This document shows, in pieces, positions 2,280 to 63,694 of a stretch of DNA of 64,000 nt. Source of the stretch: Mytilus edulis. Its lineage: Eukaryota. The stretch's first letter is position 1, and each line of letters opens with the position of its first letter. The notes beneath the pieces were generated by a model that saw only the letters and a program-made list of their open reading frames with translations, searched no databases and was not told the DNA's origin. The translations under genes were made by a program, and so were the position numbers. The stretch is from contig NC_092352.1 of assembly GCF_963676685.1 (NCBI RefSeq), positions 61,380,001 through 61,444,000 on the forward strand. Direction: 5' to 3'.

Positions 2280-5200
2280 ATGAAGTATCAAATCATACTT
2301 TTTTTTTGTTTTGGAATAAGATATTCCTCTCAATTAGATCATCTCTGTTATGATAAGTTTACAAAGTAAGTGTCTATTATATCAGGGAAAATTTAAGTTC
2401 ATTCTCATCATGTTAGAACAAATATTTCCTTACGCAATCGACAATTTAACATTGACAATTTCGAGTTTTTGATGGGGTTCGTTAGTTTAAACTAATTTTA
2501 TTTTGTGTGCTAAAGCAAAATGGATTTGTTACAAGTAAATCACACTTATGCAGTATTTTCCATAATACAATATAAATTACAATAGTAGTATAATCCATAA
2601 ATGGGGCTCGTGTTACTAAGTCTTCAGTTTTCTAAGTTGTGTTATGTATGCTATTGTTTGTCTTTTTCTGTTTGGTCAGTTTATTTTCGACTAACGAAAA
2701 AACAGTCCACTGGTATATTTCGCCTCTCTGTTACCTTTATAGCACACTTGAGAAATTAAAAAAAACCCAACATTTTCAACCTTTGATTTAAGTTGGAACA
2801 TCCTAGTTATCATTTTTAATATTCAACTTGATAGTGTGGAAATTAATTCTGCGATCGATGTCTCTGTGACATCATGAACATGTAAAAATATAAAAACATT
2901 ATGACAGTAACTGCATTGCGAAAAAGTATAAATTCACACACTGTATGTCTCTTATCGTGATTAAAAACAAATTTGCTGCAATCAAGTAAATTCAAATATT
3001 AGTGAGTTGAACTTATAAAAGTTTCTAGGTTAATTTTTTGGTATATTATTGTGAGGGATGTACAATCATACTCGGCTCTATCAACAATATGACATCCTAG
3101 ATGTCACTGCGTATATGTAAACTAAAAGTTTAAAAGAAATATATATACTATGATATTATGTCAAAGCCATTTACACCGTCATATACAGGATGTTTTCAAA
3201 ATTTCTAATGGTACATGAAAAAATTCAAAGCTTTACTGTTTACATGAATCGTCTGTTATGTTCAATGGTGAGGGAAGTTATAGATGTTGTAAAGATGGCA
3301 GACTGCAGATACCGCAATGATATATTGTGTTCTGCAAAGATTTGTAGGGACATAGTATCCTATTTTAGTGATCCCATAAAAATTGAATATTCTTTAACGT
3401 CCTTGTTTATGCTAACCTGAGCCAAATGGCTTTAGATTTGTATGGGTTACAAACAAGGCAGCACATATTGAATGTATTATGTCTTATTACAGTATTAAAG
3501 TTCAGAAATATCATTCCAACGAGAAAGTTTTAAGGTCCTTAAATATATTTTTTTATCACTCCAGACGTCGTGACGTATGCTGCGATAACTACGAATGGAT
3601 TAACCGAAAGTGCACCAGTAAGTTTCATGTAAACCACTTTTGACTTTAAATTGTGCGTCAACATTGATACCACTCAGCAAATACTACTGTTGTACACAAC
3701 AGATTTCTGTTTGCAATTTTTTCATTCAAACTGGAACTATTTCAAATAATACACCGGTTTTCTTTTTGCATGGCGTTCTCAGTTTATTTTCGACGTATGC
3801 GTTCAAATGTCCCTTTGTAATCGGTCGCCTCTATTCAATCTAAAGATTTGTTGAACTAAATTCCAATTAAAAGACAACTTCGAGGTCAATCATGCAGCAC
3901 AAACCCTAGAAATATGTAAGAGGAAAAAACGGAAGTTATATTAATGTCATTGTTCTCACTTACCCTACATGGATTGGGTAGTGATTGATATTGATGTAAT
4001 TATTGATTTTTTTTTTATCCCAATTATAGTTTTTATATTGATAAATCAACAGGTAAATATGAAGTTGACTCTTTAATGCACACAGGTCACTATGACGGCC
4101 ATGTTGAACACCTGTTGAAATGAAATGCCATTTTACTCATTATAGTCATTTGTAAATACAAAATGTATACTGTAGATATATTTGCCAGATCTAAATGTTT
4201 GGGTCATTTACATTGCTTGTGGTATTACATAAACCTGAAAAGTCTGAATAGAACATATAATTAATTGGTAATGCGTTCCAATTACATGAAGCAAAGGTGC
4301 CTTACTTACATGGAATTGACAATCCACGATATTTTCCTTTTTTCTGTCATAGTTCCTAAATATGTATACTAGGATGCACTATTGATTTTCAATTTATAAG
4401 TGAATTTCGTTGAATGTTTTTCAAACGTCAATTAAGCTACATATTCACATTAACAAAATACAGAAATTGTATTAACAAATATCTAAATGTAGCTAAGTAA
4501 ATGGTACATTATTTTCCCGTAATTATGCAGGTAAATACACGCAAAATGTTATCGTTACATGTATGGCAATTCGTCAAATACTTCTTTTTTCTGAGAAAGT
4601 ATTATAACATTTAGTAATACTCGTATTGCAGTTTGATTTAGACAAAGTTATAGCAGCCTATTCAAAAGACAAAATAAAATCCCCATTATATTTAGCTTCA
4701 AACAAAATGCAAAAAGTAAAATTAAGAGAGAAGAAGAAACACAAGACGAATAACATTATGCTTTCATGGTACTATAAATTGTAAGGGATTGACAAACTAT
4801 CTGATTTATAAATTAGAGTGCAAAATTGGAACGACTGCGGAGGCTGGAGGTCGATGTTTGTCATGCCAAAATGACACGTATGGTGAGAAGTGCGGTAAGA
4901 AGTGTGATTGCAATCAGACACAGAGGTATATCTATATGTTTAAAGTTAAAATCTAACATCGTCACTTACACATGTAACATAAAAAACTTTTATTATTTTC
5001 ATATTTAACTTTCATTGACTCCCTCTTGCTTTTATTGTGAGACACCAATTTAACATGTTTTTTGGTTAGATTATTGTAGAAACTCATTTAACTCACAAAA
5101 GATTGTCCGATTTAAGTTTGAGTACATTTCGTTGAATAGAAGTATGTAAACACGGCATCAGACCAATGTTCTAAAACTCAATTCTTCTGCATTTGACTCA

Positions 5201-8200
5201 GCTCACCATCTGGGCTGTAATCAAAATTGGCTGAAAGCCGTATCCGAAACGCATTGAAACAAAATTTTAAACAATATGTACCAAATACGACTAAGCATAA
5301 ATGTTCATGCGGGATACAACAATTTTTAAGCAGCATAATTAATAGCTTAATGTTTATTTTCTTATACTTAGACAGTCAGCTTATTGCTGCGTCGTTTATA
5401 CTTCCAGGTTAGGTTCATTTATACCATCTTTTGTACTGCAACCTTATTGTTTTATTTTAAATTCGTAATAACATGACACAGGATGACTACAATATTAAAA
5501 TCAACTGATCGATTATTTTCACTACAGGTGTGATGCTATAGTCGGGTGCATTCCAAACACTAGCACCTCTACAATAAAAACTACATATACAGGTAAACGT
5601 TACCACCATTCAGTACTTCGAAGCTTTGTTGTGCTGATGGTTCACACAATTGGTTTATTTTCGTTTGTTTTGTTAAAGCTTTGATACATATTATTATTAT
5701 TAGAGAAAAAATAGCAATTTATACTGTAATCATTTTTTTCTGTTTACTAAGATGAATACTAAAATACCATATTCTGCTGAGTTTGTTTCAAACTGCAATG
5801 CATTTCTTTTTTATTTTACATTTGTTTTATCAAACGTAAAGTAAAAGACATGTGACAAGTATAATTGGTATACACAAAATCTTCTTCCACAGAACTTTCA
5901 ACGTGGTTGTTTTGATAAGATGAGCTAAACGAACCAACGCCTGTGTAACATTTACTATTAATAAAACAAACAAAATTATAAACATTGAACACCTCTCGAT
6001 AACTAAAAAGAATGTTCCTATCAAACCCTTTGGTGAAATCGGGTGCTCATGACACATTGTGAGTGTATTTACAAGTGACAGCCGTCAATACTCCTGCTTA
6101 TAATCTTAAACTGTATCTATTTTTTTTAATACACCTGTGACGTCACGTTTGCGGCATCTATCGATGGATCGATGGTTAGTTACCACTTCGGTGTTGACAT
6201 GAATATCAATCATATGGTAATTTTTATATTTTTTTAATAAAGGCAAGGATAAATTATTCTAAATATTGAGGAATGTCTTGTCCCAGGCATGGATAACCTT
6301 AGCCGTATTTAGGACAACTTTTTGAACTTTTGGTCATCAATGGACTTCAACTTTACTTGACTTTCTTTACTATTGAGCTGAACGTCACTGATGAGTCTTA
6401 TATAGACGAAACACGCGTCAGCGTATTAAATTATAAGCCTGGTATCTATGATACCTATTAGAATGTCGAAATGTCCTTGTTTTGTTCATTTGTGAATTTC
6501 TCTATCCTGAATGTTCTTGCATTTATTTGTACAGTAGTCCTGTCATGTAATGTTGTCATTTAAGTGTTTTATCTAACATTTCCATAAAAGCACGAGGTCC
6601 AGCAGAGGAGCCTTACTTACATGAAATTGCCTCTTCATGTTATATCCCTTTTTGCTTCAGATCTCCTGAATGTATCATACATCATACATCATACAATATC
6701 GGCTTTCGATTTATTAGGTTTCAAATGCGGGATTATTTGGATGCAAAAAAATTAATTAAAAAAATGTATTACATGGGTATAAATCAAATATAAGAATGTG
6801 AATCAAATCGGTGAAAAAGAATTTGACAGCTAGTGCCCCTTTAAATGAATCAATGATTGATTATATATCATGTTTACGTGACGTTAAGTAGGCAGATTTA
6901 TAAATCATAATGACAGTACCTGCATGAATTACGCCTGTTTATCGATATCGGCGCACAATACGTGAAATTAAAATATATACCAATCGAAGAATGCAAGTTT
7001 TGGTTACGCGCAATCGACTTTATTAAAAAATCAATTAATCTTAGTAAAAAAGTTAAATGCAAAATAAAGGGGGGAATTTAAGCATTAAATAATTTTGCTT
7101 TTGAAAATATTCTTAAAATACCCAGAAGCAGCAACTGTTATAATATGTATAACAAGTGGTAGGTAAACCAGAAAAAGGGTCATAGTATTTATATACTCAT
7201 AAGTCTAAACGTATCACTCTTCAAATATAGGGCTGCATCATATGCAAAAAAAAAAAAATATTAAGTCTTGCATGCAAATTGATGACTTTTTGTATGAATT
7301 GTTTTTTTGTAGTGACACATCTTTAAGTTAATAGATGATAGTCCAAACGAAAGCTTCCGTGTTCGTGGTATCTTTTTTTGCAAACCAACGTATTGCATAG
7401 CGGCGCAAAACTGGTGATAGTAAAATAAAAAAGCTAGCGCATGTTATGATTATGTGTATCCCTTTTATCGTTTTTCAAACACCAAATCAAAAATGAAAAG
7501 AAATGTTTTACACATTAAATATTATCTCTACAGGACCCATTGAACCAACTTTACTTCCGAATGAAAAAGACACTTCAAATGAATCAACATTAACAAGGAA
7601 TGGTAAGCAAAAACACATGCAAATGATTATTATTGTTGTTTCTCGATTTTCTGATGAGTTTAATCAATCTTGCATTTAATTAACATAAGAACATACTATT
7701 GGTTGACAGAAAACGGTCTTATACTTAAAGATGCAATTATATAGTCTGCTATATGAATATACGTATGTAATTAGTCTAAACATTTTTATTTATAATGGAT
7801 TGCATTGAGAAACAAGTTTTGCAACTTATATTAATCCCTTTTCACTTTACGGGTGCCAGTACTGCCTTGTAGCGGCATTAGCCTGCTCTTTCCGAATCTA
7901 CAAGGGTGTCTTTAACGTGCATGAGATATGGCCCTCTCTGAACACGGGTAAGCCATTTATCGATTATACAGATGTTATTGCTTTCAAGATCGATACACAT
8001 AAATTAATCATTGTGTTATTTTCAAGACGATAGGGTCAGAAAAATATCGGACTAATGATCAACTTTATCCCACGGTATATGTGATATCAAAGAAAAAAAG
8101 TAAATGTGTGTGAGTTTGTATTTGCATGTGAAATAAGATATATATATTTTTTTATATTTGAACCATTATATTGTATTTATTCTTAGTAATCATTATTTCA

Positions 8201-11200
8201 GGAGCTCCTGATGACTGGATAATTTATACACTGTGTATTACTAGTTGTTTCTTTGTTACTGGCTTTGGACACCTTTTTCGTATATACATAAAACGTCGAT
8301 CACAAAAAGTTGGAATCATCAAGAAAAAAGGTATCCCGGAACCTTTCACGTCATCTATTGGTGACTTTAATCAAGAAGACAAGACGCCAATACAATTTGT
8401 AACGACGGGATCAAATGTAACACCCAAAGCATCTCATGAGGACACTATTAACTTTGTTTGTCATGAAAGACAATCTTACATAACATTGATGAAGATGATG
8501 AAGATGGTAATTTTGACCTTTATTTCGATATGAAGGAAGACGTTGATCACCAAGTAGAACACCATGCATTACAAAAGGAATGCCTTTCAACAAGTTCTTT
8601 CAACTCAATCGTTGTTAGTCAAGATAAAACAGAAATTGATGAACCGCTATCAGATTATTGCCAGGAAGATGCACATGCGTGTGAGGTATCCGTTACGGTT
8701 CATGAAAGACAATCTTATACAGCATGTAATGAAGATGATGGAGTTGATGAAGCTGGATATTTTGATCTTTATTTTGATATGAAAGAAGACGTCAATCACG
8801 AAGTAGAACACCATGCATTGCCACATAAAAGCCTTTCAAATAATTCTTTTAACTCAAACGTTGTTAGTAAAGATAATACAGAATTTTATGAACCGCTATC
8901 AGGGTATTGCCAGGAAGATGCACATGCGTGTGAGGTATCCGTTACCGTTCATGAAAGACAATCTAATATAGCATGTAATGGAGATGATGAAGTTGAAGAA
9001 GCTGGATATTTTGATCTTTATTTCGATATGAAAGAAGACGGCAATCACCAAGAACAACACCATGCATTGCCACAGAAAAGCTTTTCTAATAGTTCTTTTA
9101 ACTCAAAAGATGTTGGTCAAGATGATACAGAGTTTCTGAAACCGCTTTCGGAATACTACCAAGGAGATTTAGATGCGTGTGAAGAATCTCTTTCGGTTAA
9201 TCAGTGCATCGAACGTTCTTCATTGTCTAAAGAAGACACTGCAAGCAATGTATATGTTAATGTGTACCAACTGCTGCAAAATGATAGGCAAAAGAATAGT
9301 TAGCTGGCGAATGGAAACCGGCTGTCTCCAGATAGTTATTCAGCTCGTGATAAACACTGAAGAAAGCCATTCCATCACGATATCGAACAAGTTATTCACA
9401 GTATTGCACAAACAAGTATGCTGAATCGGAGATAACGATTAATGCTTGTGGTTCAATTGAATCTAACAATGACAAATCAATTACTGAGGAAAAGTCGAAG
9501 ACAATTTAAAAGTAAACACTTCGAAGATGAGTAAGCAGAAAATCTTTCGAACATTCTGTTTTTTTATATCCTAAACGAGATGCAAGTATAAGATTTTAAT
9601 AATGTAAGAACATGTTTGTGTTTGTATTATTGACTTCTAATCATCATCAATTCGGTTGCTTTTATATGTAAAGAAAAAATTAAAAACATATTTTGTTGTA
9701 TATCAAATGTAAATCTTGTAATCGAGGTTGACATTGTGACACAGACTGATTGAAAAGGACTTTAAACTTATCATTCTTTATTCAATAATGTATGTGTGCA
9801 ATGTTTTATTAAGCCTTATAGTTTTCTAGAAATAAATTTAACTTAACATGGTTAATGTCTCATTTGATTCAATCAAATATTAAGAATACAATATATTTTG
9901 AAAATAGTTTGAAAACATGTCACTTTTACGTGTCACGGTTTAACAGTGCCGCAACATCATATTGATTCACATCGTATACATGACCTCTGGATACCCGTTT
10001 TACTTGAAACATTTTACTTTCCGATTGTGCACTTTGTAAAAAGCATTTTTATACACCTTTTACCTAATTCAATAACCAAATAACATCTTTTTATAGTAAG
10101 GTTGTTTAATTGAAGGGGAGTATTAAATACTATCCTGATTTTCATTTTTTAAGAACACACTTTAAATCATAACTTGTGTAATGCCTAGCTGAAAGAAAAA
10201 CTTTAAGGATGTACACCTCTGAGAATTCAAAAATTTCTAGAATAAATCTTTTTTTCTTAACCTGATTTTTGGGTTTATAAGACTGTAACAAAATAATTGG
10301 TGAAGAAAAAATCATATGGTGGTGCACTTCTTTTTTAGCTACGGCCCTTTAAAAATGCCCAATTTTGATGATTTTCCCATTTTTCATCGATTTTTACCTA
10401 TTTTATTGAAAAAAAAACCACAGTTCCACAATTAAACTTTTTTCATACTTTCTATAAAGATGAAGTGGACCAATCTAAATAAATTTTACTTAAAAAAAAC
10501 TATAGGTAGGTGTTAATATAAAAAAGTTTTATAATATTTTGACGCTTTTTGGTGTAAAATTTACCATGCTGTCAATTTTGTATTTTTGTGATTTTTCTCA
10601 GTTTTAAGAACAAAATACATATTATTTCAACTTTTTTGTTATAAATAATTGAAAAAATACATATCTAAGAAATTTGAAAAGACCAAAATGATAGGGGATG
10701 TACAAGATTCTTGAAAAATAATTTTTTGTATCCCTCACCCATTTTCTCAAAATTTGGGCTAAAAATACAGACTTGATTGGTCGTAAAATTTGAAAACTTG
10801 ATTACTCAAAAACCATTCATTGTAAATACACAAATTTTTCACAGAGTTATGTTTGATAATAATATTTTTAAAATTCATTGATATTTTCCACTTGTATAAC
10901 ATGTTTTGGAAATAATTCAAGAACGAGATTTCAACGAGACTGAACGAGACTGAAAAGTCAGAAGAATACACCCTTAAATCGAAATTTGTGTACTGCTAAG
11001 CTGAAAGAAAAACATAGAATCGATAAAATAATATTCATTGACGGTATTTAAATCAGAAAATGCTAATTTCAAGGCTGTTTATGTCGTATAACACATCTTG
11101 AAGTGTCACTATTGTCAAAGAAAGAACAGTTGACGGTCAATCATTCATTTGATAAATTCTGACACCACTCGATATGTTAAGGACAAGAAATACCATCTTT

Positions 11201-14200
11201 CCTGGAATATAATGGGAACAAAATAACAGCCAGCATTGCATTATTTAAACAATAGCGGCACAGCATTAGTGGTAGCAAAATTAGAAAGAATTCGGATTAA
11301 TGTTATGTTATGTTATGCTATGTTTTTTTTTTTTTTTAACTTAATCAGGTATAAAACATGCAAAAACAATGTTTGTAACCATTAGACAATTCCTCTGTAG
11401 GGAATACTGAACCAGCAATACTTCTGAATAAAACAATCACTACAAAAGAAACAACGGTTATGAACAGTGGTAAGTACAATCACACATATTTTGTTTGTGC
11501 GTCACCTTCGAATAAAATAAATCATTGCATGAAAATTTCTAAATATCATTAGATAAACAGATGATATATTCTTCAAAACGTAAATGTATTGTGCTCTAAT
11601 AATAACTGGTCGATATATAAATTAAAATAGAAGTCTTAGAATAAAAGCGAAATATACCAATGACCTTTTAGCGAAAAGGCAAATAACTGTTTACAAAACA
11701 CAACATAGACAAACTAAAAGGAAACAAACACCTTCACAACCGGAGTGATCGTCTGTGCTCTGCAAGTGCTAGCAGATAATGCTCCAAGTGGAACCTTTCG
11801 TGTTGTTCTCAAATAAATGTCCTTTTATTGAAAATATAGAAATATCTCATATACAGATAATATTCTGAGATTGCTCTGACGCTAATGGCATTCTATAGTA
11901 GTTATTCGGATTGTTGGATGTCAGAGCGCAGTATATATAAATTATATAATTGCCGATCATGACTGAAGGCGGCCAGTTATGTCTAGAGATAGAGACATAT
12001 CCATTTACCAGCAGAATACATTTTCGCTCTCATTAATATTTTTCATCTTCAAGCATGTTTATTCTATTCAACGACTACCATCTGATAGCACAGACAATCG
12101 CTGTATTCTAGTAGGCTCTTAGTTCAGGATCTATCCTGTCATTTTGATCAAATTATGACTGCGTTATGGCATTTGATGCAAATATATTTGCTGATGTAAT
12201 TGTATATGTAAAGCCGTCGTTGAATCACAAAGGTAATCACGATTTTCTTCCTCCACTCAAATACAAACGACTCGTTAACCAACTCATTTGCATAAAGAAG
12301 CTCAAATGAGTACAAATAGTTCAAAGAAATAACGATACTTTGCAGTGATAAGCATGCGCTTATCATGTATTGGTATGAGGAATGACATTGTCATTTATGC
12401 TAATGGGTTGTAGTCGGGCAATAAAAAAGTACATATTTGTGTAAAAAAATAGTGATATAACGAAATATCATAAAGGATTTATCTGCTTACACAAAATCTT
12501 TAAAGTTATCTAAACATCTACTTGTCACTGCAAGTGTCGGCGATTAACATATTTTATATGGAATGAGTTCTGAAATTCAGCGGACTAAGCGATCCATACA
12601 TTAGTCTTCCGGACTAAACATTATACCACTTTGTGTCAACTATGTTGTGAAAACAAAACGATATGGACATGCTAAACAATATCAGTTTTCTACGTATGAC
12701 ACTCTCTGACAATATGAAATATGTGTTTAAAAAATTCCGAAAGGTAATTCACCAGAAGAACTGTAAAAAGGTAAAAAGTTCATCCACCAAGAAAAGTGAT
12801 GTAAAGTAAAAATAAAAGATGTTGTATGATTGTCAAGGAGACAACTGTTCACAAAAGACCAAATGGTACAGAAATTATCAACTATAGGTCACACAGAACG
12901 GACTTAAACAATGAACAAAGTCAATACGGCATAGTCAGCTATAAAGGCCCAGAATGACAAATTTAAAGCAGTTCAAACAAGCAAACTAACTGTTAATTTA
13001 TGTATAAAAAACGATAACCTCTGAATTATTGGCTACTGACAGGCATATCATGCATCATAAACTAGATAAGCAATCATTGCACATCCCACTTCTTATAAAT
13101 TTGTTGTAAAGACGTCCTAAAAGATCAGAGAAAAAATGTGACCTTGTGCAATGCCAATATACAGGTCCATGAGAGTGTATTTGCATGTGTTATTAGGCTC
13201 ATACACTATTTTAACAGTTATTGATATGTTTTAATATAATTGAAGGAACGGCAATATCAGAATGGATCATTTTGACAATATGTATAACCGGTTGTTTCAT
13301 TATGGCTGGTTTTGGTTATTTGATTTGTACATTCAGAAAACGACTGTTTATGGAATCAAGAATCACAAATGAAGACGTGATATTAGAACCCTTAGAACCT
13401 TCTCCTTATTTTGGCGTCTATGATGAGATTGATGAGAATCCATTAACATTTGACACGACGGATATAAACGTACCATCACAAGAATCTCATTACGAAACTA
13501 TTGATATGGTTTCTCAAGAGAGTCTTTCTATTGCAACCAGTTCTGAACATGGTGACACAGGATACCTCGATCCTTATTTCACAATAGAAGAGGATGAAAA
13601 TTACCAATTGCAAGATAAAACATCACAGGCAGAATGTAGTTCATTTAATTCGTCCAACGAAGACGGTGTAGATCAAGACAATAAAGCATATAACAATCTA
13701 TATCAACCACTTCAGGAGAATTGGCAACTAGATTCACATGGTTACGAAGTCCCTGTGATGGTTCATAAGAAATTCAAAATTTCTGCAAATGAATATGTCA
13801 CAAATAATGCATCTTATAATCATGATAATGTGAACAATCCACTACAAAAAGACAGGTATATGAACAATCCCACATATGAAAATCAGAAGTTTCAAGAAAC
13901 AAAAGCAGGCAATGATAAAACATTGGTTGGAGATGATTCATCATATGTATTAAAAATTGGAAACGTACATGATTACATAAACATGAAAGCTGAATCTAAT
14001 ATATCAATGATTAATTGTCATACAGTGGAATCGTGCAAACCGACTGATCGAGACAAGTCAGCGGCAACTGAACAGAAATCATTTCGTAGTGAAATTGATT
14101 TAAAAGATGAGTCAACGAAAGCAAATTCAAACAAAATATATTTAAACAAAATATATCGGGACGAAAATGATAGTAACTCGAACAGTTATGAAGACGCCAA

Positions 14201-16477: not shown

Positions 16478-16557
16478 AATATATATGTTGATAAGATATA
16501 TGAATTACTAAAATATCACGCTCTGATAGAGGGCAAGAGAGATCAGATTTGTCTTAA

Positions 16558-50300: not shown

Positions 50301-50385
50301 TATTATAGTGTTCAAATTCTTCCTTATTGTTAAAACATGCTTGTATGGGTACTTTGGTAATGACTTATTCTGTTATCGATTAAAG

Positions 50386-53300
50386 ATGAAATATCAAGTG
50401 ATCATTTTACTTATTTGTGGAATAAGAAATTCCTATCACAGAAATTCAACAGAAGGTGTGTGTTACAACAACAAAGGGTACGTTTCTATGATGTAAAGCG
50501 ACATCGTATTTCAACACATGTACATGATGTTCCATCTAATGTTTCAATATGTTGTCGAAAAATAACAACACTTTCAAGGGGACATTAAATTTTACATGTG
50601 AAAGGTATTAAAAGAGGGACGAAGATACAAGAGGGACTGTCAAACTCATAAATCGAAAATAAACTGACAACGCCAATAATTTAACCTTACAGTTACTACA
50701 TTATATGAAACATTCTCGAAGCGGTGCACAATCGATTGCACAATAATGATATTAATTGAAAATTTGATGTCACATGGGTATGATGTGTGAGTCCATTTCG
50801 CAATTAGTTGTCCCACAAATACATAAGCACGCAGATCCACAGTTCACGTTTTGTGTAGAACGATATATGCACATAATGAAGTCTTGACATGACGATCCAC
50901 TTAACGTTTTATAAAATATCAGCTTCAATCGTACTTGCTTTGAATAGAATTAGAATGGGAACACTTATTGAACTTATTCTTTTCAATAATAATTTTGACA
51001 CTAGTTTACTATAACATACAGTTTTGGATATTAATGCTATCTGTTTACATTTCAGACTTCATGATTGCTGTTTTAACTTCGAAGCTATCAAGGGTATATG
51101 CAAAGGTAAATTTTGTTAACTATTTTTCATTTTTAATCGACTTGTAACGTTTATATTCACTTATATCATGTTAAAAAGGGGTATTTGCCCCAAATAACGG
51201 TTGAGGGATCAACCAATTTCTAAACACCGTTAAGCGTGAGAAAAAATATGCTTACCTCGAAACCAGTATTTTTGGCAGATACATCTTGCAAGCATGACAT
51301 AATTGTGTTATACCACCGAATGTTCTTTATATACATCTTGACATTCTGGACCTTATATTTTTTATTGTATCAGGTATCTCATGACGTTTCTGCGTGACTT
51401 AAAAAGAAATTGTATTATCTGAATCTAATTGCATTGACCGTAAAAAAAAGGGTTTTTTTTATTTTTTTCTCACAATATCAAATTTTGTTATTCAATTATT
51501 TCCTGATATATAAATACCTAAGTAGCCAGGGTCGCATACTTAGGGAGGACCCCTGTATTTTAACAGCCTCACTTGATCAGGGAAAATATCAAACGAGTTT
51601 AAACTTCCCATAGTTTTACACAGCTATATTTGAATAACCAATACAATTGATTTTACCTGAAAAGCATCACTGACACTGTAATACATAACAATTATCGTAT
51701 ATTCGGTTTACTGACTATCATCACACATGTGATTGGGAAAATAAAAGTTATAATTTCATGTTTTGAAGTACAGTCACAGACCGTGAATCGACTTATTAAT
51801 GCAGTTGAAAATGCGTTCCTGCAGAGCTTTATTTCGGATGTCATTAAAAATACAGGTAGAATGTCTCTCGCTCTAAATACAAAAATGATGTTTAAATTTC
51901 CTAAATGTTTCACTTCTTACATTTGAAAGAGATGCATCATATAAAGAATAGCCATAAATTTTACTACAAATATTTCATGGGATGATTTTTTAATATTGTA
52001 TCCCCCCCCATCTTCAATGGTATTTGACAGCAAATACCCCCGCACATGGAATTACCTTATGACAAATACACCGACAAAGAAACTAAAATCTCAAAAAAAT
52101 AAAACAATTGTGCAAAATACCAATTATCTCATTGAATCAAAATACAAAGTTATAACATCAGGTGCAATTGCATTGTTAATCTCGGACATTGCTGTTGATA
52201 GTAGATTATCAGTTTACAATCGTATCATCACCTCTCCTGCAGTCAGGGGCGTTACTTTTTTAAGTTACTTATATAAGTAATTTTGTTTTAATTTTAATAG
52301 AATCATATACTAAATGTAGTTTGAATGACTTTTTATATCATATTATATCATCAAATAAAGATTTAATTAAATTTGAGAGGAGTATAGAGGTAAAGGGTTA
52401 CATTAAAAATAATGATAAAAACATTACATGAATAGGTTATGTTATACATTTCAAATTTGTAATAAACTTTTTGAAGGAACATATGAAGTTTATTTGGGTT
52501 ACCAGTTATAAATAACTTCAAATCTTAATTAATTCACAAGTGTCTATTTATTTATATCAATCTACTTTCAAGATTGTGGATAATTTAATAGTCCCAACAG
52601 ACCAATATTTGACCCAAAAGAGTCGGTATGAAAGATAAGTGCGTCAGAAAGTTCATTAGTGTTTCAGAAAGCATAAATCTTTCTTTTTTCAAACTGATTT
52701 AAGCGAATATGTGTGTTTAAATTCACTTTAAACGGGACATTGATTTGATATAAATATTACACATCCTTTTGGGTTTTTTTTTTTTTTTTTTTTTTGTATT
52801 CATGTATTCAATTATAGTATTGTTGTTCCTGTTTCCTATATTACAATGCACACCCTTCCGGGATGTTTCAATAAACATTTAATTGTCCATATACCTTTTG
52901 ACTGATTTATTTTTTTAACAATATTAAATATATTGATTCGTCACCCGAAGATAGATGTATATGCAAAAAGAATTATGAATTACTCGATTCCACTCTTAAT
53001 CATACTCGACTGTACTTATTTGTACCTGACTCTTATCGTTGCCATTGAAAATAGTCTGAACTATTACTCGACCAGTCTGAAACAGTCTCAACCCATTCTC
53101 GACTTGCACTTGACCAATACTTGACCAGTTCTTAACCTATATCTTTCAGGCTTATTCATGCTCAACCAAAGGTCTGGGCAATACTTGACCAGTCTGAATC
53201 TTACTTGGCCAAATTATTTCCTTTTAACTGACATGAGAACAGCCACAATAAAATAAAGATATATGAATATATATCATCAGATTTTTAAATCGTACATGAT

Positions 53301-56300
53301 TCTTAGATTTATCAAAAAAAGATTGTTTATTTATATTAATAATAAGCATAAATTTTAATCTTGTAATGAAACAAGATTTTCTTTTACCTGAAACCACATC
53401 TATACCGAGGATAACAACACTTTGTTTATGTGCTTCTTAGTTTCATGCGGATTTCTTTTAACTTAATTTTTCTCAATTCCTGAATAAAAACTACATAGGT
53501 TTCATTCATGGTTAAATACACCAGTTATATATCTATCTTTTTAATGAGGTAACAACAGCCAACAAAATCACTGAAATTGTTTAACCTCATATTAGAATTA
53601 TATCTATTCCTATTATAATTTGGGATAAATCATATAGTTACATGAAATATAATATTTCATGTATAACATGTATAATATTTATCAAACGGGAATACAAAAT
53701 CAAAGAAAGGAATAAACAAGTTCTTCTTATTACTTGTAAAGTAATAAATTATTCTCTCCTGGTCAAAAAATTACAAATTTCAAATATTATCCATTCAAAA
53801 TTATAACATCTAGTAAAACTTTGATCGTAAAGCCTAAAGATAAGTAAAACACGAGTTTAAGAAAAAAAGTGCTTTCTTTTAATCTGTAAAACACGCATGT
53901 ACTGAGATAATTGAACTTGATTAAAGTACTATGAGTATGCCATGTCTAAACTTTTGACAAAACGTTTAATTTAATTGAAATCAATGTTCACTCCAACTTA
54001 TAAAAACATTTCCTTTCTTAAAAGGTTATCAAGGATTGATATCGATTTTTTATTATAATGATTTCATTTAATTTTTGATTTTACAAAATAAATGTGTCAC
54101 TTTATAGATTTATTAAGTTACTTTTTATAATGTTTTATATATATTTTGTAAAAAAACAATGTTCACTGCATTATTAACTAAACTCAACTCACACTAATGC
54201 TATAATAGGCTTAAATGATAGTGTGTGGTAACTATGATATCATTTTGTGAGGAATTTCGATGTTTGCTATACCACTGCTAATTTCAACAGACTTAATAAC
54301 AATACTACTACTTTATTATATCAAATAGAATGAATTTTTGGCATTGTTTTAAGAAATGATTCTACTTTGAAATCATGTATCATTTGTGATACATTAAATG
54401 TATAAAAAGGACGAATTTTCATAATAAATTCAATACTTATGTAGACTTTTAAAGCCCAACTTTTTATCGCTTCAAATATATACGCAAATGAAAAATTTGA
54501 AAACTATACCAATACAGAACGACATGTTTTTGTACTTAGAACAAAATATTTAGTTTACAATTTATTTTTCGTTTTTGCAAAATATCAACTTAAAATATCT
54601 ATCATTTTCTTCCAACCCCTATTACTTATTATGATGTGGACCTCTCATTGTTATTGAATCTTACGCAATTTACTTGGATTACATTATTATTAGTTTACCT
54701 TCAAACTGGTTATGCTTTTCAAACGTGTATATTGTTTAATCAGACCATGCATGAATGTGTAAAGTAACTTAAATGACCTTACAAACGTACACTGTACGAG
54801 CTCATATTACGTTTTATCAATGAATCGAAAAGTATAAAGGTTGAAAGGTAAGACTGACCACTTCTTATATTTTCGCAAATTTTCCCAGATATACATTAGA
54901 TGAATTGTTTTACATAGACTATTGTGGAGATAAAAGACAAAATTTACTAATAAAACGTTTTATTCCATTAAAAAAGTAATTGTTTGTAGAGAAATGCCGA
55001 AATATAGTTTATTTACGGTTACGCAAAATTAAATATTGTTTATCTTTATAAAAAAAATCAGTCCCATTGCAATATTATAATTATTATTAATCCCAAACTT
55101 ATGAGTTCAGAAAATAGTGTCGAAAAGTGTCCGATCATTCTAATATTGGACATCAAAAGTCAATACGATCGTTGTAAGGTCTACCTCACCCAATTTTGTT
55201 AGGCACAATAATGGTGAAAAATTTCCAGTCTTAATCTATAAAATATATCTGAAAAATTAAAAACATTTTGAATAAGGTTGAGAAAATATAAGTCCAGTTC
55301 AGTTAATTTGAGATTATTTGATCGCCTTATTTCATTTTTATTTGAAAGTTGATATGTATGTATGTTTATAACAGGCGAAAATTCAGTTGAAATAGAACAA
55401 AAGAATGGAAGCTCTTTGTTAGAGAAGGCTTACAGTAATGTTTACTATATTAACAAAATTTTTAAAAATTAATAGAAGCAAATTAAATGACAGTTTTTGG
55501 TTAAATCACGAAGTATTTTTTCATAAAAAAACACCATTTGCATACGTTGGCAACTATATATTGCATAACTAAGCAGAACAATTAGATAGTAAGTCGACGA
55601 CATGGGTGTCTATTCAGTCGTTTGTAAAATAAAATGCATAACGTCTGATTTTTAAAATAAAATTACCACAGGCGGAAAACATATTTTCTATTTGTCCCTT
55701 AATTTTCGTTTCTAAACTTCCATTATGTGACTCAAGAAAATATTCCAAAAATGAGAAACAATCGTCGAAAAGAGAAAATCGAGTGCACCTTTATTTGTTA
55801 GAGCGTATTTGGGTCGAATATTTTGTATGATACATCATCTCGCTTCATATTCTATCATTTTTATATGTCAAGGCTTCAGGTTGACTTTATAACATCAAAA
55901 ATTCACAGTACTAAAAAAATGAGACATATGGGTAAAGTGAAATATCTTTCTAATGAATTACAAACACAGAGTAGATGCGTTCGAATAGCAAATTTTTACT
56001 AAAAGTACTTGAGGACAGACTTTCAACAATGTTTAAGTTGTATCTTTAAAATGCATATCTTCGAGAGAAAAAAACTTCATTGTTTGTGTGTGATAATTAT
56101 GGTTTATAGTCTTCAACCGCTGAAAATGTTTAGTCTGCCCCTCCACAAATTATTTTATTTGATTTTTTTAAATGTTTTTGAATTTTCGAAAATTACACCC
56201 GACAACCGACCAGACAATAGTTTTACGTTGACTGAATACAGACAAGTACATTAACTGATGCTCATTAGCTATTTGTATTTCAGCGCGTCATCCCTACAAT

Positions 56301-59300
56301 GGCGTCAAATTTTTAGATTGTAAAAATGAACTGGCGTAATGGGGAGATAACTTTGACGAAGTAGAATTCTGACTGTATAAGTCTTTATGTATGGTGTTGA
56401 AGTTATATTATGACAACGGGTGCCACATGTCAGCAGAATCTGCTTACCCTTCCGGTGCACCTGAGGTCACCCCTAATTTGTTGGGGTTCGTGTTGTTTAT
56501 TCTTTAGTTTTCTATGTTGTGTCATGTGTACTATTGTTTGTCTGTTATTCTTTTTCATTTTTAGCTTTGGCGTTGTCAGTTTATTTTCGATTTATAAGTT
56601 TGACTGTCCCTCTGGTATCTTTCGTCCCTTTTTTTATGTTTATTGTGAAATTTTAGTTTCAATGCTATATTGAATGCATTTTTAATTCAAAATTGTTGTT
56701 CAAATTTCAAACAAGGGGAACTACATGTGTAGCTGTTGTTAAAAAAAGTTTATTATTGATGAAATACAATAGATAGATACAAATGGATAGGTCTCGGTTG
56801 GTTAAGAGTTGGTCCAGTATGGTTCAGACTAGGTCTAGCATAGTACAGTCAAGTACAGATATAGACCATGCTGTTATAAAAAAAAAACTTAAGGATGTTC
56901 GCTGCTCAGTTTCAAAATAAATAACTTTTCATAAAACTAGTATGCATTGATACGGAATGAATTGAGGAATCATAAAAGCAAAAAAAAATATAGGGGTCAA
57001 TGTGATTGTTTTCGAGATATTAGCCATTGTAATTTTGGCGGGACAATGTTCTCTCTTGATTTTTCATAGCTTTATCATTGACCAGTTAAAGTTCTCAAAT
57101 AATATTAAAAAATAAATAAAATTTTATAAAACTTTTACAAATGATTTATAATTATACATGTAAAAGATTAATAAAAAGAAAAATGGGGGTTTCTTCGGGA
57201 TTTTTTTTAAGGCATTCAAATGAATAAAACTAGAGGATTCCGAAAATCTGACAAAAAAACATGACAAGCAGACATCCTTAATGTTACATTTAATCGAACA
57301 TTATAATAATTACAAATAACTGTCGAGTATTTGAAAATATACTCAATTACCATTCCATATTATGATTATCCAATCCTTGTTATATAAAATGATTTTGGAT
57401 TCACTAGTGTTTTGATTTGAATATTGATCTTTTTTCGTATAGATTGCTCTATCGTCGTGATTCTTCCTCTATAAGACCATTTGATTGATAACGCCGTCTC
57501 AGTCTCAACGTTGTGCATTAACATTTACCACTTTTACAGTTTGTTCGGTTTGAAAATAATTGACAATAAATGAATTATCCGTGAATGTTTTATATTATGT
57601 TTTAATGTGAGATAATGTTAAACGAACTGATTAAATACTCTTTTAGAATGTCGAAATGGAACAACATCAAAACCTGGAAGTACATGTCGTCCATGTAAAA
57701 AAAATATGTATGGCAATCTGTGTATTCAGAAATGTAACTGCACTCAGTTTCAGAGGTATCTTTCTTATTTAGAGGCGCAAAGTAAAAGAAATTGTGATCG
57801 CCAATCAAAGATAATATGGTTTACGGAAAACCTTCTGATTTACATTATATTGTCATACTTTGATTCAATTTTTTTTTCAGAGAATGATCTAAATACATAA
57901 AATCACATATGTTAGAACGCTCCATCTTTAAATGTACTTTAGATGCTTTGAACATTTCAGACAGTTTTTGTCAAAAATGAAAGTGGCCACATCCGTGTTC
58001 ATTCTCAACCTTTTTATATGGTATGTATTATCATCAAATACAACTTACATTTAAATATTAAGATTGAACACGAATGCGGTTTCTTCCATTTTAGAAGAAA
58101 ATCGTCAACAATTAAACAAAATGCGAAAATTTTGAAGATTTCGGTAATTTAGCATTACTTTATTATGGTAGTACCCGATACGTGTGTATTTTATTGCTCA
58201 TAGGTATGTAACAGAAGTATTCTTCCTTCCAATTAAAAGCTTAAAGTTTACATTTGATCAATTTTGACAAACTGCTATATCTTAGGGCCTTCTACTTTAC
58301 TATTTATTTGTGGGTGGTTCAAATGTGCAGTTTGTTTAGAAGCTTTAAATAATTGTTTGAATAGTGCAGATCGTCGTGCATGCAGCATATATAAGCATAT
58401 ACTTACGATTTCACACTCTGCCGTCCAGAATTACCTCGATTCCTGTTCTTTTTGTATATTTTTTTAAAACTTGGTGTCATATATAATGAGTCTTTTGATA
58501 ATATGTTTAATATACAAAAAGATATCAAGAAAAAAACAATAAAGGTTTTTTTTAACAAATCATGTACTTTGAAGACAAGCATTTCATCAACATATTCGAC
58601 AAATACAGGTAACAGAACTGAATATAAATTTATTGCGACTATGGTCATTTTTTTAAACTGACGATGAATGACAAATTTGTCTGTCAATCAAATAAGTTTC
58701 CAATCCGTAAATTTGTTTTTACACTTACAAATTCATTTCTCGAAGACTGATAAAATTATGTATCATATGTGTTTGGATTTTTACACAACAAAGAGCGGTC
58801 TGTCTTGAGCCAGGGGCCTGTATTCAAAAGTTATTAGACGTGTTTTCACATTTCTTGTTTATGGATGTTACTAAAATCAGGATGTTTGTTATCCTTGTTT
58901 TATTATCAAAAATGTTGTCATCGATGCTGTTAACTTCTCTGAGGTTTACTATACGGAATGGTTTTGCTAATTGTTGAAGGCTATTCGATGACTTTTAACA
59001 ATTTACAGTGTTTTCCTTTTGGTTTAATTGATATCCATTCCGAATTATTGTTAATATTTTAGATGCACACTGATACAGCGTATTTTAATTTGTAACGCAT
59101 GAAAGACTTTAATTGACAAAACAAAGATTTTGTGATGTTGTATCTTGGTAACAATGTGTTGTTTTTGCAAGATTTCATTCGAGTTTTTGAAAAATTTTCT
59201 GTTTATATTGTTTTAAATTATAAAGCACTAGCATTGCACTTACCTATGTTGTTTTCTTTGTTTTTGCAATATACATGTATTTAATCAACCAGCCGAGGGG

Positions 59301-62300
59301 TGTGTGGTACGTGACATGAAACGCTCTTTCTTCAATCCTGTTAAATGGTGTATAGTTATGTAACAACCTTCATACTTAATCATATGAAATATCATTTGAG
59401 AGACAATCAATCTAAACATCATTTCCGATGCAAACAAAAGTTACCATGCCTTTTTAAACAATTGTACTTTTGGTTTTGAAACCTGAAATTGTCAACTACA
59501 CAAAAGACCAAAAGTAATTAACACCACAGGGAGAATCCTCATTGTCATTGTTATTGTGTTGAAAGGTAATGTTAAAAACTCCAATAAACTATCACTGCAA
59601 GTTCACGACGGTCCCCAATATCGTCTTAAGTGTTATTCCTCAAGTACTGATTGTCAGAGTGAAATCCTTACAAGTACCCAAATAATTCAAACAGCTCTAA
59701 AAATTGAAGAGTTACCTACCTATTTTTTTCACAAAAGTATTCACTTTATCTGCAATATTTTTTTCTTTAATTTATAACACATACATGTAGGACTATTGAC
59801 AAAACCTTTCACAAAATAAGTGTTGAATGCTGGCTGTGATTCAATATCACATTGCAATGTCTGCTTATTTTTCAGAAATTTCGCCAATATGGCTTTGTAC
59901 GTGGAAAAAAAGTCAGTGTCACGTTACATCTACTTTAACCAAACAGTTGCACTCGATTACGTAGGAAATATACAACACAAATGCATAATGTACGTGTATG
60001 ACTTTCTAAAAGAAGGCTTAAATAACTTTAATAAAGCTAATAATGCCAAATCAATAGGCAAAGGTTCAATTCGACTGCTATTGATGGTCTGTTTTGGAGT
60101 TTTCATCATATGTTATTTGTCTTGACTGACACACTGGCTGTTGGAAAGATTTAACAACCAACGAATTCGATTAAGTCCTATAATTAGGTCTTTCCGATGT
60201 GTATGTTTATGTTACATCTAAAGGGCAGACTTAGGCCGTGTTCACAGCAAACGCCGTGTACAGTAAACATGTTTACATTTGGTTTAATGTAATGTACACT
60301 AGTTTCACATTAATTTTGTTCACATCTATACACCTTTTTTAGCTACCTGTACATAAGACTTGTTCACACTTGTAAACTATATGTCATTTAAATGTTCATT
60401 ACGTAGAACCGAATTCAAATTTTCGAACAACTTTTCTAGCAGTTAGGGAACGACCATTTGACTTTAAAAAAAGGGGGGATGGATTTTCCACAATTTGATT
60501 AAAAAAACATCGGGTCATTCAGATGATTAGAATAAACAAATATTTCTGAATCCAAAGTTTTCTCATACATTATAGTGTTAAATATTGAATTGGTATCATC
60601 GAAAAAAAAACTAATTATAATATAAACTTCGCACGAGAAAAAAATCTGACTTAGACCACCCCCCCCCCCCCCCCACCTTTTTTTTTAAGAAAAGTGGTTG
60701 CACCTTTAAGAAAGTCATTTTGGATGATTTGCAGTAGTTTAAAGATGTATCGGTTACCGCATTAAAAACGTCTAGTAGGCTTGCCATCAGCCTGCTTTCA
60801 GACGAAGAAAAATAATTGCAATGTTAAGGATCACTACATTTCTATCTTTTCTGTTTGTTTAATACGGTATTTTTTCTCCAAGGAGTATTTGGCAAGGAGT
60901 ATTTGGCAAGGAGTATAATGGGGTAATAAGTATATACATAGGAAAATTAAAGTTCTGAATGCCTAGGTTTGTGTACACTTAACATACACAAGGCCTACAT
61001 CGACTATCGACTGAATGTAGACAAAGCATGATTTAAACTACATGTGAACATTGAGTTTTATAAATGGGAACGTAATTATGTTTAGTTTATGTGTGAGTTA
61101 CACTAACACAACACCGAGTTTAGGTCAATGTGAACACGGCCTTATAAGACAATAAAAAATCACGGCCATTTATTGAATATGTCTAATTGAAGCAGCGATA
61201 GTCAAATAAAAAATGTAAGCTCAAGTTGATTAAATAATTTAATTATGAACTCACACTGCTAAAGAAATAAATGCTTTACAACACTTATCAATATCTCTGC
61301 AGGACCTACTAAACAAGCAATGTTTCCAAATGAAACAGTCATTGCAAACAAAACGACAACTTTAAACGATACAACAGTTATAACGTATGGTAAGTAAAAT
61401 CATTTGATATTCATTGTTTCTCCTCGACAATCAGATAAATGCAATCAAATATTAATCTTTACTGGTATTAAACTGATAACCGTAACTGGAATTACGTATA
61501 TCCCAATATGGCGACGGCAGAAATAGGTAAAATCTTGACAGTCATTTTTTCTGAAATGTAGCATGTTTTTGTCAATAGTTACTCAGCTGCAAGGTTTTCC
61601 TATACCATTATACCATATTTGAATCGTAACGGTGCACTGGAATTGTCTGAGCGCTTTGAAATTTGCCGTTGAAAGATTCGGGATGATAATTGTAACGTTA
61701 TGGCATTTTTCTTGTTTTAATATCGTAATTTTTTTATCGGATAATAGTAACTGAAAAAATAATAGATGTGGCTTTCATCATTTCAATCGTATTTTGTGTG
61801 TTAAAATGCAAATGCAAATGTCCAGTTAAACGATGACGTTAACGCAAATTAAAAATAAATGAAGAAACTTACAGGTTAATATCTAGGACAATTTACTTAT
61901 ATATCGATTGTTATAACTGACAACACTATGCATAACCTGTTACTATATACATGTACCTGTTAAAGATATTGAAAATGAAGCAGGTGTTGAGTCAGTTATT
62001 GTGGTATCTTACCATCTAAATTTGTATTTTCTATAACGTTATTGTCTATCACTGTAGCCAAAGGAAATCAATTTTACTGTTTGCTTCACATAATATTTTT
62101 ATTAAAGTAACAAAAATTGCTATAGGACAGCAGACACATAAGCGTATTTTAGTTTTCATAAATCTTCATTTTTTATGAGGTGACTTTTTCGAATACAATA
62201 AAACGAAAGCAACTGTTTTTGATAATTTGCTTTCTCAGTCATTTTTCTCTACAAATATGAACTATCACCCGACTACCATCTCTGGAGTTATTTCGTTGAC

Positions 62301-63694
62301 GCATTTGTAATATAAAATTGAGAAAGGAAATGGAGAATGTATCAAAGCGACAACAACCCGACCATCGAGCAGACAACAGCCGAAAGCCACCAATGGGTCT
62401 TCAATGTAGCGAGAAGATTCCGCAATCGGAGGCGTCCTTTAGCTGGGCCCTTAAAAATATGGATACTAGTACAGTGATAATGGACGTCAAACTAAACTCC
62501 GAATTATACACAAGAAACTTAAATTAAAAATCATACAAGACTAAAAAAGACCAGAGGCTCCTGACTTGGGACAGGCGCAAAACTGCGGCGGGGTTAAATA
62601 TGTTTTTGAGATCTCAACCCTCCCCTATACATCTAGCCAATGTAGAAAAGTAAAGGCATAACAATATTTTTTGAGCTTTTTTTATCTCAATAAGTTGATA
62701 AAAGCTGCGTTTGCATACTATAGAATTGAATTGAAGGAAAATTAATAGATTTGCATATGTTTAATAATGTATGTCATCTGTTTTTACTAATTATAGCAGT
62801 TTATTTTTGCTTATTATTGAAGGAACGTCAATATCAGGATGGATAATTGTGATACTATGCATAGCTGGTTGTATCATTCTGACTGGTTTGGGTTATCTGA
62901 TTAGAACATACAGACAACGACTATCTGTTAAATCAAGAATCATAAATGAAGGCGCGATATTAGAACCTTTAGGACCCGCTCCATATATTGGCGTCTATGA
63001 TGAGATCGACGAAAATCCATTAACCTTTGACACGACAGCTTCAAACGTAACACCACAAGAACCGCATTACGAAACTGTTGATTGTGTTTCTCAGGAGAGA
63101 CTTTCTATTACAACAAGTTGTGAACATGACGACACAGGATATCTTGATCCGTATTTCGTAATAGAAGATGAAAGTGATAAATTACAAGATAGAATATCAC
63201 AGACAGATTGTAGTTCAACTAATTCGTCCAACTCAGACGTCGTGAATCAAGATATTATAGCATATAAAAATATATATCAACCACTTCAGGAAAACTGGCA
63301 AGACAAATCACATGGTTATGAAATCCCAATGATGGTTCATGAGGGTTTCGAATGTTCTGCAGGGTTTGATGAAAATACTACCAGTAATTCATACTATAAT
63401 GTGTATAAACCGCTGCAGAAAGAAATGGATATAACGAATCCCACGTATGAGAACCAGAAGTCTCCAGAAACAAAAGCAGGAAATGATAAGAGTTTTTTGG
63501 GGGATGCTTGTTCATCTAAAATCACAACAGGCAATTTACATGATTACATAAATATGCATGCTGAATCTAAAATATCAATTAACAATTGTGATGAAATGGA
63601 ATCTTGTAAGCAGTTTGATGAAGACAATGTGCAGAAAATTAATCAACAATCGTTCAGTGTGGTGACTTTTAAAGTGGAATCAACAAACTTGTAA
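50386..63694 (+). CDS. Receptor gene 3: spliced EMI/EGF-like type I membrane protein (exon 4 not found)
   Basis: Exons 50386-50477 (MKYQVIILLICGIRNSYHRNSTEGVCYNNK), 51056-51105 (LHDCCFNFEAIKGICK), 57647-57755 (CRNGTTSKPGSTCRPCKKNMYGNLCIQKCNCTQFQ), 61303-61389 (PTKQAMFPNETVIANKTTTLNDTTVITY), 62823-63694. A phase-2/phase-1 exon is required between 57755 and 61303, and I could not locate one. Confidence 0.7.
56412..56633 (+). mobile_element. Penelope-like 3' UTR fragment
   Basis: Reverse complement of 23514-23735, ending ggtatctttcgtcccttttttt. Confidence 0.8.
56893..57277. mobile_element. TTAA-flanked MITE
   Basis: ttaa|ggatgttcgct ... agcagacatcc|ttaa. Confidence 0.6.
60234..61141. mobile_element. 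PIF/Harbinger-type MITE with a nested smaller element (about 60445-60705)
   Basis: TIR ggccgtgttcaca / tgtgaacacggcc with a TTA target duplication on both sides. The nested element has agggaacgaccattt..G-run / C-run..aagtggttgcacct ends. Confidence 0.8.
62310..62665. repeat. Interspersed repeat sharing the ctcctgacttgggacaggc...ggggttaaa core
   Basis: The core matches 39708-39790. Confidence 0.55.
62823..63694 (+). CDS. Terminal TM plus Tyr-motif tail exon of gene 3
   Basis: ORF 62771-63694 with acceptor tgaag| at 62822. TM WIIVILCIAGCIILTGLGYLI; motifs YDEI, YETV, YLDP, YQPL, YEIP, YKPL, NPTYEN, YINM. Confidence 0.88.

Follow-up and report, generated by a model that had tools for sequence, protein, structure and literature searches.

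A partly decayed tandem array of putative miniature single-pass receptors with a twelve-cysteine head in Mytilus edulis

We analysed a stretch of 64,000 nucleotides from Mytilus edulis (NC_092352.1, labelled C9, positions 61,380,001-61,444,000; hereafter the window), which is a portion of a tandem gene array of at least 145 kb. All elements of the cluster lie on the + strand, and the array continues on both sides, with further tail units at about -35 kb, +84 kb and +109 kb from the window start. In this A+T-rich DNA (G+C ~31%) the long + strand open reading frames (ORFs) are only four exons, at 8171-8533/8530-9303, 13221-14213, 40600-41268 and 62771-63694, each of which encodes a transmembrane (TM) segment and a tail; direct-repeat and BLAST comparison showed the four tails to be mutually paralogous. 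We have moderate confidence that the locus as a whole is best explained as an array of lineage-expanded miniature type I receptors, with a proposed role in signalling, that undergoes birth-and-death turnover.

The segments upstream of the tails are repeated in order, with exon 1 at 2280, 29886 and 50386 and exon 2 at 3565, 31904 and 51056, and the repeat families D15 (exon 1), D17 (exon 2) and D2, D4 and D5 (tail) represent paralogous copies within the window. When the translated window was scanned with a regular expression, the cysteine pattern of the head appeared on the + strand only, and solely upstream of tails (gene A: 3578, 4855-4911 and 5529; gene B: 31914, 33630-33686 and 36217; gene C: 51066 and 57685-57741). 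The proposed internal exons have AG/GT borders throughout and the phases 2, 1, 2, 1 and 1 common to the paralogs, with lengths of 86, 53, 109, 65 and 69 nt in gene A, 77, 50, 112, 65 and 69 nt in gene B, and 92, 50, 109 and 87 nt in gene C (the fourth exon being lost), each series followed by one TM+tail exon. Two genes on another chromosome, C6 (L038 and L039), have exons of 50, 109 and 62-65 nt in the same phases, and this identical plan argues that the micro-exon architecture was inherited and did not arise by chance. A public full-length model from M. coruscus (P0008, 450 amino acids) shows the identical order of parts and can be aligned to the window exon by exon; P0105 and P0165 are further public full-length models with their parts in matching order. 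The canonical product would consist of a signal peptide, a head of ~70 residues with 12 cysteines, a Thr-rich N-glycosylated stalk, one TM helix, and an acidic, probably disordered tail of 200-380 residues with conserved tyrosine motifs. An earlier note, made from the letters of this DNA alone, had described micro-exons with shared phases and 12 cysteines within about 70 residues in its genes 1 and 2 (our A and B); the exon plan holds in the three window genes and in the two C6 genes, and the 12 cysteines were counted in A and in B. Its picture of three hidden spliced paralogs stands only in part: A, B and C do follow the exon plan, yet gene C has no usable exon 4 and the tails of A and B are damaged, and the genes escape the ORF track and seemingly also, for A, A' and B, the protein set of the assembly, but the family is already modelled in RefSeq and UniProt.

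Gene A begins with an 86-nt exon (2280-2365) that carries the start codon, the signal peptide and the first cysteine and ends in phase 2. Exon 2 (3565-3617, 53 nt) encodes CCDNYEW and three cysteines; exon 3 (4817-4925, 109 nt) encodes the EGF-like core CxxC....YGxxCxxxCxC with six cysteines and shows a weak Pfam match to EGF_LMN_ATRN (E 0.014); exon 4 (5528-5592, 65 nt) encodes CDAIVGC and the start of the Thr-rich stalk. The stalk exon (7534-7602, 69 nt), located by tblastn with P0008, contains an N-glycosylation sequon, and the TM+tail exon (8187-9303) has acceptors at 8187 and 8202 and an ORF stop at 8533. Introns 4 and 5 contain repeats (6070-6870 and 7670-8070) with very high read depth in all four runs compared; the reads there have many variant letters and loose ends, and represent expressed multi-copy transposon-like elements rather than a gene A signal.

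Transcripts were checked for gene A only, over window positions 2270-8269. In run X1, whose organism label is that of the DNA runs in which gene A is best represented and whose status as RNA is a guess of the search tool, a 356-nt contig joins 2293-2365 to 3565-3617 and on to 4817-5043 across GT..AG joints (2365>3565 and 3617>4817). A second X1 contig joins 7529-7603 to 8188-8268, which we read as the canonical junction 7602|8187 with a single-nucleotide polymorphism at the first base. A contig of run X3 shows 7602|8202, with an acceptor 15 nt downstream that is also in frame, and 8187 and 8202 appear as alternative in-frame acceptors of the tail exon, one in each run. Three of the five gene A junctions are confirmed in this manner, at low expression in the runs examined. 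The X1 contig also includes intronic sequence (4926-5043), and a public 123-residue model, P0054 (M. californianus XP_052074218.1), ends inside the intron that follows exon 4; both would encode secreted heads without a stalk. Soluble heads produced by intron retention may be a feature of the family, or these may simply be unprocessed RNA.

Downstream of gene A lies a second stalk-and-tail unit, A', composed of a 69-nt stalk exon (11401-11469), phase-compatible with gene A exon 4, and an intact TM+tail exon (13246-14213) of 321 codons with 18 tyrosines in its cytoplasmic part. We found no cysteine-rich head exons belonging to A' upstream of 11401. Its tail shares ~61-63% amino acid identity with those of B and C, and the stalk-to-tail intron of gene B is homologous to the A' interval. 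This suggests an ancestral gene made up of gene A exons 1-4 and A', the stalk/tail-A cassette being an insertion or a partial duplicate.

Gene B comprises exon 1 (29886-29962, 77 nt), exon 2 (31904-31953, 50 nt, encoding CCHNYED), exon 3 with the EGF-like core (33589-33700, 112 nt), exon 4 (36216-36280, 65 nt, encoding CDAEVGC), a stalk exon (38711-38779, 69 nt) and a TM+tail exon (40574-41412) in which the ORF ends at 41268 and homologous sequence goes on to ~41412. Its intron 3 harbours two direct repeats of 471 bp (33721-34191 and 35501-35971) that are 100% identical and 1780 bp apart, the first beginning 20 nt past exon 3. Their appearance is that of terminal repeats flanking a very young insertion, either of long terminal repeat (LTR) type or similar to a terminal-repeat retrotransposon in miniature (TRIM).

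In gene C, exon 1 (50386-50477, 92 nt), exon 2 (51056-51105, 50 nt, encoding CCFNFEA) and exon 3 with the EGF-like core (57647-57755, 109 nt) are followed by a remnant of exon 4 (58563-58608) in which a deletion of 20 bp (alignment A3) has eliminated the splice acceptor together with the codons for CDAxVG, and with them one cysteine; no in-phase acceptor remains there. The stalk exon (61303-61389, 87 nt) encodes three sequons, and the TM+tail exon (62823-63694) is intact, with 289 codons. The public NCBI M. edulis protein P0001 is 99% identical to this tail; it lacks a signal peptide, and its first Met is one within the stalk exon, as expected from the deletion of the exon 4 acceptor. Window positions 53697-63699 are duplicated on an unplaced 24-kb contig, C1573 (L041, positions 1-10000), from which they differ over 10 kb by 1 mismatch and 23 indels (99.76% identity). 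We considered it as a second allele of gene C and rejected this, since such identity denotes the same haplotype; it looks like an assembly duplicate. Between A' and gene B are two relics, one of exon 1 (17924-17970; 81% identical to gene C exon 1, with a stop in the signal-peptide frame) and one of exon 2 (23063-23161; D17), in which CC has become CS and no in-phase acceptor is found.

No copy in the window is fully intact in this assembly, and for this reason the locus itself may be non-functional; this weighs against our interpretation, as do several of the transcript data. Beyond the exon-3 donor the X1 contig runs on to 5043, retaining intron 3, and low coverage goes on over intron 3 and exon 4 and partway into intron 4, which leaves the junctions between exons 3 and 4 and between exon 4 and the stalk exon unsupported, with no reads for either among the runs compared with 2270-8269. 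Two raw RNA-seq runs with a related organism label gave zero exon reads and transposon-derived reads only. Of the splicing predicted in the earlier note, a part is confirmed. Together with this very low RNA depth, the gene A tail ORF of 109 codons, which a 1-nt deletion near 8485 brings to an end at 8533, the three in-frame stops of the gene B tail relative to C (one at the ORF end and two more in the homologous remainder), the deleted exon 4 acceptor of gene C with its public model starting at an internal Met, the relics of exons 1 and 2, and the in-frame stops in several C9 tail units outside the window would all fit a locus that is essentially dead, its copies being pseudogenes, with or without transcription, or fragments and the working members lying elsewhere (C6, C8). 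We consider this possible, although on the whole rather unlikely. The homologous frame beyond the gene A stop stays open for 257 codons, to 9303, in DNA of 30% G+C and across three 249-nt repeats (8487-9233; D3), and P0021 (labelled M. galloprovincialis in the database), which is 99% identical to the gene A tail, reads straight through in frame at ~8485. The window is therefore one base short near 8485, which argues for a frameshift that is very recent or allelic, or for an error of assembly. Furthermore, all family-conserved tail motifs of gene B precede its stop, the long tail ORFs of A' and C are intact, the ratio of nonsynonymous to synonymous substitution rates (dN/dS) of the tails, 0.45-0.54, points to past constraint, and spliced contigs do exist. 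What we see here is a decaying part of the family, and the relics, the tail-only unit, the frameshift, the premature stops and the destroyed exon bear out the birth-and-death turnover that had been suggested.

The family as such is genuine, large, essentially mussel-centred and uncharacterised in function. An exhaustive HMMER search of 1.84 billion protein representatives with a profile built from P0008 and P0014 retrieved 156 proteins at E<=1e-3, the longest of 749 amino acids, and about 90 among the matches listed cover the ectodomain. Twenty clusters were looked up, 17 of them from Mytilus (edulis, galloprovincialis, trossulus, californianus and coruscus) and 3 from oysters (Saccostrea and Magallana). 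In this genome the tail has at least 29 matches and the head at least 31, spread over C1, C3, C6, C7, C8, C9, C11 and C12. Members carry names such as 'uncharacterized', 'MEGF10_11', 'EGF-like domain-containing' and 'TNFR-Cys domain-containing', the Magallana member being named 'platelet endothelial aggregation receptor 1' (PEAR1) or 'MEGF10'; one protein of 750 amino acids with the name NRCAM was matched by the tail profile alone. When the P0008 ectodomain was the query of a word-indexed search, P0008 itself was the sole return, and our search of the literature found no description of such a mini-receptor family. Annotation easily misses the micro-exon heads, and nearby public models are truncated, in the wrong frame or fused (P0001, P0021 and P0005 being examples): P0021 starts within exon 3 but out of frame and omits exon 4, tails A and A' are run together in both P0005 and P0012, and P0003 fuses two tails. 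On C6, the locus L035 (G000:C6:53070500-53080499) contains a tail-related gene whose EGF exons (~1683-1703 and 4700-4771) are of a more canonical and complete MEGF type, C..G.YG..C...C.C..C..CD..TG.C.C; this gene is a possible link between the mini-receptors and multi-EGF relatives.

In searches and structure prediction, P0008 and P0054 from the databases were used in place of full-length products, and the window exons were compared by reference to them. In an alignment of 39 members the 12 cysteine columns have a mean entropy of 0.03, versus 2.62 elsewhere, and only cysteine and glycine columns are conserved. The core motif is present in 34 members, CCxN[YFH] in 25 and CCxG[YW] in 3. Searched against PDB sequences, the family profile matched 6u11_A (an 'EGF-like domain-containing protein'; E 2.9e-5) and EGF repeat 3 of Tie2 (E 1.2e-3), and the pattern CxxGxxGxxC..C....YG..C...C.C....CD...GC could be aligned column by column with both. 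In P0031 and P0038 the module extends to a full EGF ending (GCxCxxGxxGxxC), and P0058 and P0078 have 2-3 units. The nearest clusters in the ESM Atlas are mollusc 'MEGF10' proteins (score 0.87, a lead only). We are fairly confident that the head is a CCxNY motif followed by ~1.5 EGF modules of MEGF/PEAR1/Tie type, ending at CDxxxGC, and the profile matches are in line with the EGF-type head proposed before.

Several domain and fold searches tell against so specific an assignment. Pfam contains no EMI or EGF domain that matches any of the 39 members at E<=0.01, EGF_laminin and EGF_PEAR1L included (EGF_laminin reaches E 0.011, in P0038 only), and EMI does not match P0008 or P0014 even at E<=10; a phmmer search of PDB sequences with P0008 likewise found nothing. 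With the 39-sequence alignment, AlphaFold2 predicted the head of P0054 at a predicted local distance difference test (pLDDT) score of 90-97 over residues 31-100 (P0008 with a 2-sequence alignment gave a pLDDT of 30 and was unusable), and Foldseek found no match to this model in the PDB at E<=1e-3. Its best hit was an N-terminal fragment of SCARF1 (8hn0, residues 20-132; E 7.6e-3, prob 0.93, TM-score 0.24), with the cysteine-rich domain (CRD) of EphA2 at rank 3. VIA-align gave Z values of at most 4.6, tied among ELAPOR1 (4.6), the TNFR-type CRDs of DR6 and DcR3 (4.2-4.4), Tie2 (4.0, at 29% identity, the highest) and Eph CRDs, with SCARF1 at 2.6 over 44 residues. All these Foldseek and VIA-align scores are weak, those for the TNFR type lying under the levels that separate folds, and the structural check that the earlier note had in mind yielded EGF profile matches on the one hand and ambiguous fold matches, among SCARF1, TNFR and Eph, on the other.

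With the order of the VIA-align scores in mind, an alternative would be a head that is no EGF relative and has instead a CRD of TNFR type or an ephrin-receptor-like one, which would make the proteins cytokine-type or decoy receptors. Pfam matches of this kind occur sporadically, to TNFR_ELAPOR1_6th in 3 of the 39 members (best E 5e-5) and to Ephrin_rec_like in 1, and UniProt names one member 'TNFR-Cys domain-containing'. The family profile, however, favours EGF over the Eph CRD, which it matched at E 0.05, and C..C....YG..C...C.C.....CD...GC follows the Tie2/MEGF repeats column by column; the full EGF ending of P0031 and P0038, the highest identity being to Tie2, and tails in which we found neither a death domain nor a TRAF-type feature argue the same way. 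The head would share with TNFR and ephrin-receptor CRDs an elongated disulfide-ladder fold, but sequence-profile support for them is below that for EGF and TNFR-type signalling elements are not seen in the mussel tail, and we regard a CRD origin as distinctly unlikely. The assignment to EGF-type modules is the one we retain; in Tie2 and 6u11_A, unlike the mussel head, the repeats are embedded in large multi-domain ectodomains, and Tie2 signals by a kinase domain.

A', B and C have acidic cytoplasmic parts (isoelectric point 4.3-4.4, ~19% Asp+Glu) with 10-18 tyrosines. This agrees with the layout described earlier, of a type I single-pass protein with a tiny 12-cysteine head, a Thr/N-glycan stalk and a tyrosine-rich tail. 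Among 15 aligned tails, at least 80% share the motifs PYxGxYDExDE, ET...V, GYLDxYF..ED, Y...Y..L.E and GYEVxVxVH; the family forms of these are PYxGxYDEIDE, SxYETI/V, GYLDPYF, YxxxYQPL and HGYEV, and ET...V is part of the SxYETI/V site, which resembles an immunoreceptor tyrosine-based inhibitory motif (ITIM). Many distant members also contain motifs similar to YDEIDE and GYL[ND]PY. For YxxL/I/V the count per tail is 5-8 in A', B and C and in the family members D and E, and one in the truncated tail of A. Of the motifs that the earlier note had emphasised, NPxY is found in the A'/B/C subgroup but is not conserved across the family: NPTY and DYINM are limited to this subgroup, with NPTY absent from D, E and P0008. 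Neither a canonical immunoreceptor tyrosine-based activation motif in the tails of A, A', B, C, D and E nor any Pfam domain in the window tails was detected.

We propose, from its motif content, that the tail is a phosphotyrosine docking scaffold. The small head would bind a ligand or partner, clustering would then lead to phosphorylation of the tail by Src-type kinases, and the phosphorylated tail could dock SH2/PTB adaptors. Such a protein would be a one-module analogue of MEGF10/PEAR1/SCARF/Draper-type receptors, and might activate or inhibit, given the ITIM-like motif. If it signals in this manner, the family would include the smallest known relatives of the MEGF10/PEAR1/SCARF/Draper class, reduced to one EGF-type knob, a mucin stalk and a phosphotyrosine scaffold, and its dozens of mussel genes would offer a tractable system for the minimal ectodomain that signalling needs and for the shuffling of head and tail cassettes. 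At present it is an uncharacterised lineage-specific family, of which this locus is a partly decayed example.

Comparison with known receptors places the family near several classes, of which Draper/CED-1/MEGF10 and Nimrod do not include it. With MEGF10, MEGF11, PEAR1, Draper and CED-1 it shares the type I single-pass topology, a motif CC-x-[G/N]-aromatic close to the N-terminus, an EGF module resembling the type C..G.YG..C...C.C....CD...G.C and a long tyrosine-containing tail, with NPxY/YxxL in the local subgroup; relatives have been given the names MEGF10_11, MEGF10 or PEAR1 by automatic pipelines. MEGF10 is defined by its EMI domain (IPR011489; PMC9334734), Pfam PF07546, which was detected in 0 of the 39 family members; the mussel heads have ~1.5 EGF modules instead of 10-17, the last cut at CDxxxGC, and their tails are unrelated in sequence, with the family-specific motifs YDEIDE and GYLDPYF. 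The family profile retrieved no canonical long MEGF protein, and the earlier assignment to Draper/CED-1-like receptors does not survive, the EMI domain being undetected and multiple EGF repeats being replaced by one truncated and one half module. The NIM repeat of the Nimrod proteins has the consensus CxPxCxxxCxNGxCxxPxxCxCxxGY (PMC4073527), which as a strict or a relaxed regular expression matched 0 of 39 members. As in Eater and NimC1, a signal peptide and a motif resembling CCxGY just N-terminal to EGF-like repeats are combined in a clustered, lineage-specific family. The tails of Eater and NimC are short, whereas the mussel tails are long and rich in tyrosine. SCARF1 (SREC-I), a class F scavenger receptor (structure 8hn0; PMC11563577), would resemble the mussel proteins in its tandem EGF-like disulfide ladder on a single-pass receptor. 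The match is weak, as the TM-score and Z value above indicate. In SCARF1 the EGF-like domains are numerous and the tail is rich in Ser and Pro. We conclude that the family belongs neither to Draper/CED-1/MEGF10 nor to Nimrod as these are defined, and is a miniature variant of EGF-type single-pass receptors.

The earlier note had also seen here a rapidly evolving ectodomain, and a candidate locus for immune or self/non-self recognition. We computed dN/dS for each exon set by the Nei-Gojobori method; synonymous sites are saturated (dS >1) in most paralog pairs. Between B and C the heads share 47% amino acid identity (dN 0.34, dS 0.61, omega 0.55) and the tails 71% (dN 0.16, dS 0.30, omega 0.52). 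In other pairs identity is higher in the head than in the tail (A-B 54% versus 31%, A-D 51% versus 30%, C-D 55% versus 39% and D-E 49% versus 36%), and heads are therefore not generally faster than tails. The discordant histories of head and tail, as seen in A-B versus B-C, indicate cassette or exon shuffling, or conversion; the homology of the gene B stalk-to-tail intron to A' belongs to the same mosaic history. No reliable omega above 1 was found among paralog pairs, the sole exception being a saturated comparison of 42 codons, and the claim of rapid ectodomain evolution is not sustained.

These data also bear on the idea that the cluster is a recognition locus, immune or self/non-self, which hyper-diversifies in the manner of Hydractinia Alr or Biomphalaria GRC, with diversifying selection on the ectodomain and presence/absence variation among individuals. 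The cluster is lineage-specific with fast turnover, the head conserves only cysteine and glycine, and the B-C pair diverges more in the ectodomain than in the tail; in addition, the gene C tail and the M. galloprovincialis protein closest to it share only 91% identity, against ~99% for A and A'. The substitution rates just given and the better conserved ectodomain in most pairs speak against it, however, as does the presence of the gene A region in 6 of 6 listed DNA runs (share 0.49-0.94 of gene A words), and the additional contig C1573 is the same haplotype. Such a locus appears to us very improbable, and an immune or allorecognition role is speculation. Both the A and the A' stalk-TM-tail cassettes are phase-compatible with gene A exon 4, and one could imagine that gene A exons 1-4 are alternatively spliced to either of them, giving one specificity with two signalling outputs, with soluble heads made by intron retention, within a polymorphic array that serves non-self or conspecific recognition. 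Mussels are hosts of transmissible cancers. This extended scheme would be even less probable than a recognition locus as such. The A-then-A' order appears conserved, since a single M. galloprovincialis contig carries the proteins closest to the two tails.

Elsewhere in the window, Rfam at gathering scores returned nothing over the whole length, and no ribozyme. Beside the exon-2 relic, two adjacent ORFs of 141 and 308 amino acids lie on the - strand (23811-25190), neither with a significant Pfam match. Between A' and the relics, positions 15114-16347 are occupied by a tandem satellite (D1, D7) of ~147-bp units, present in 6-8 copies with 62-87% identity.

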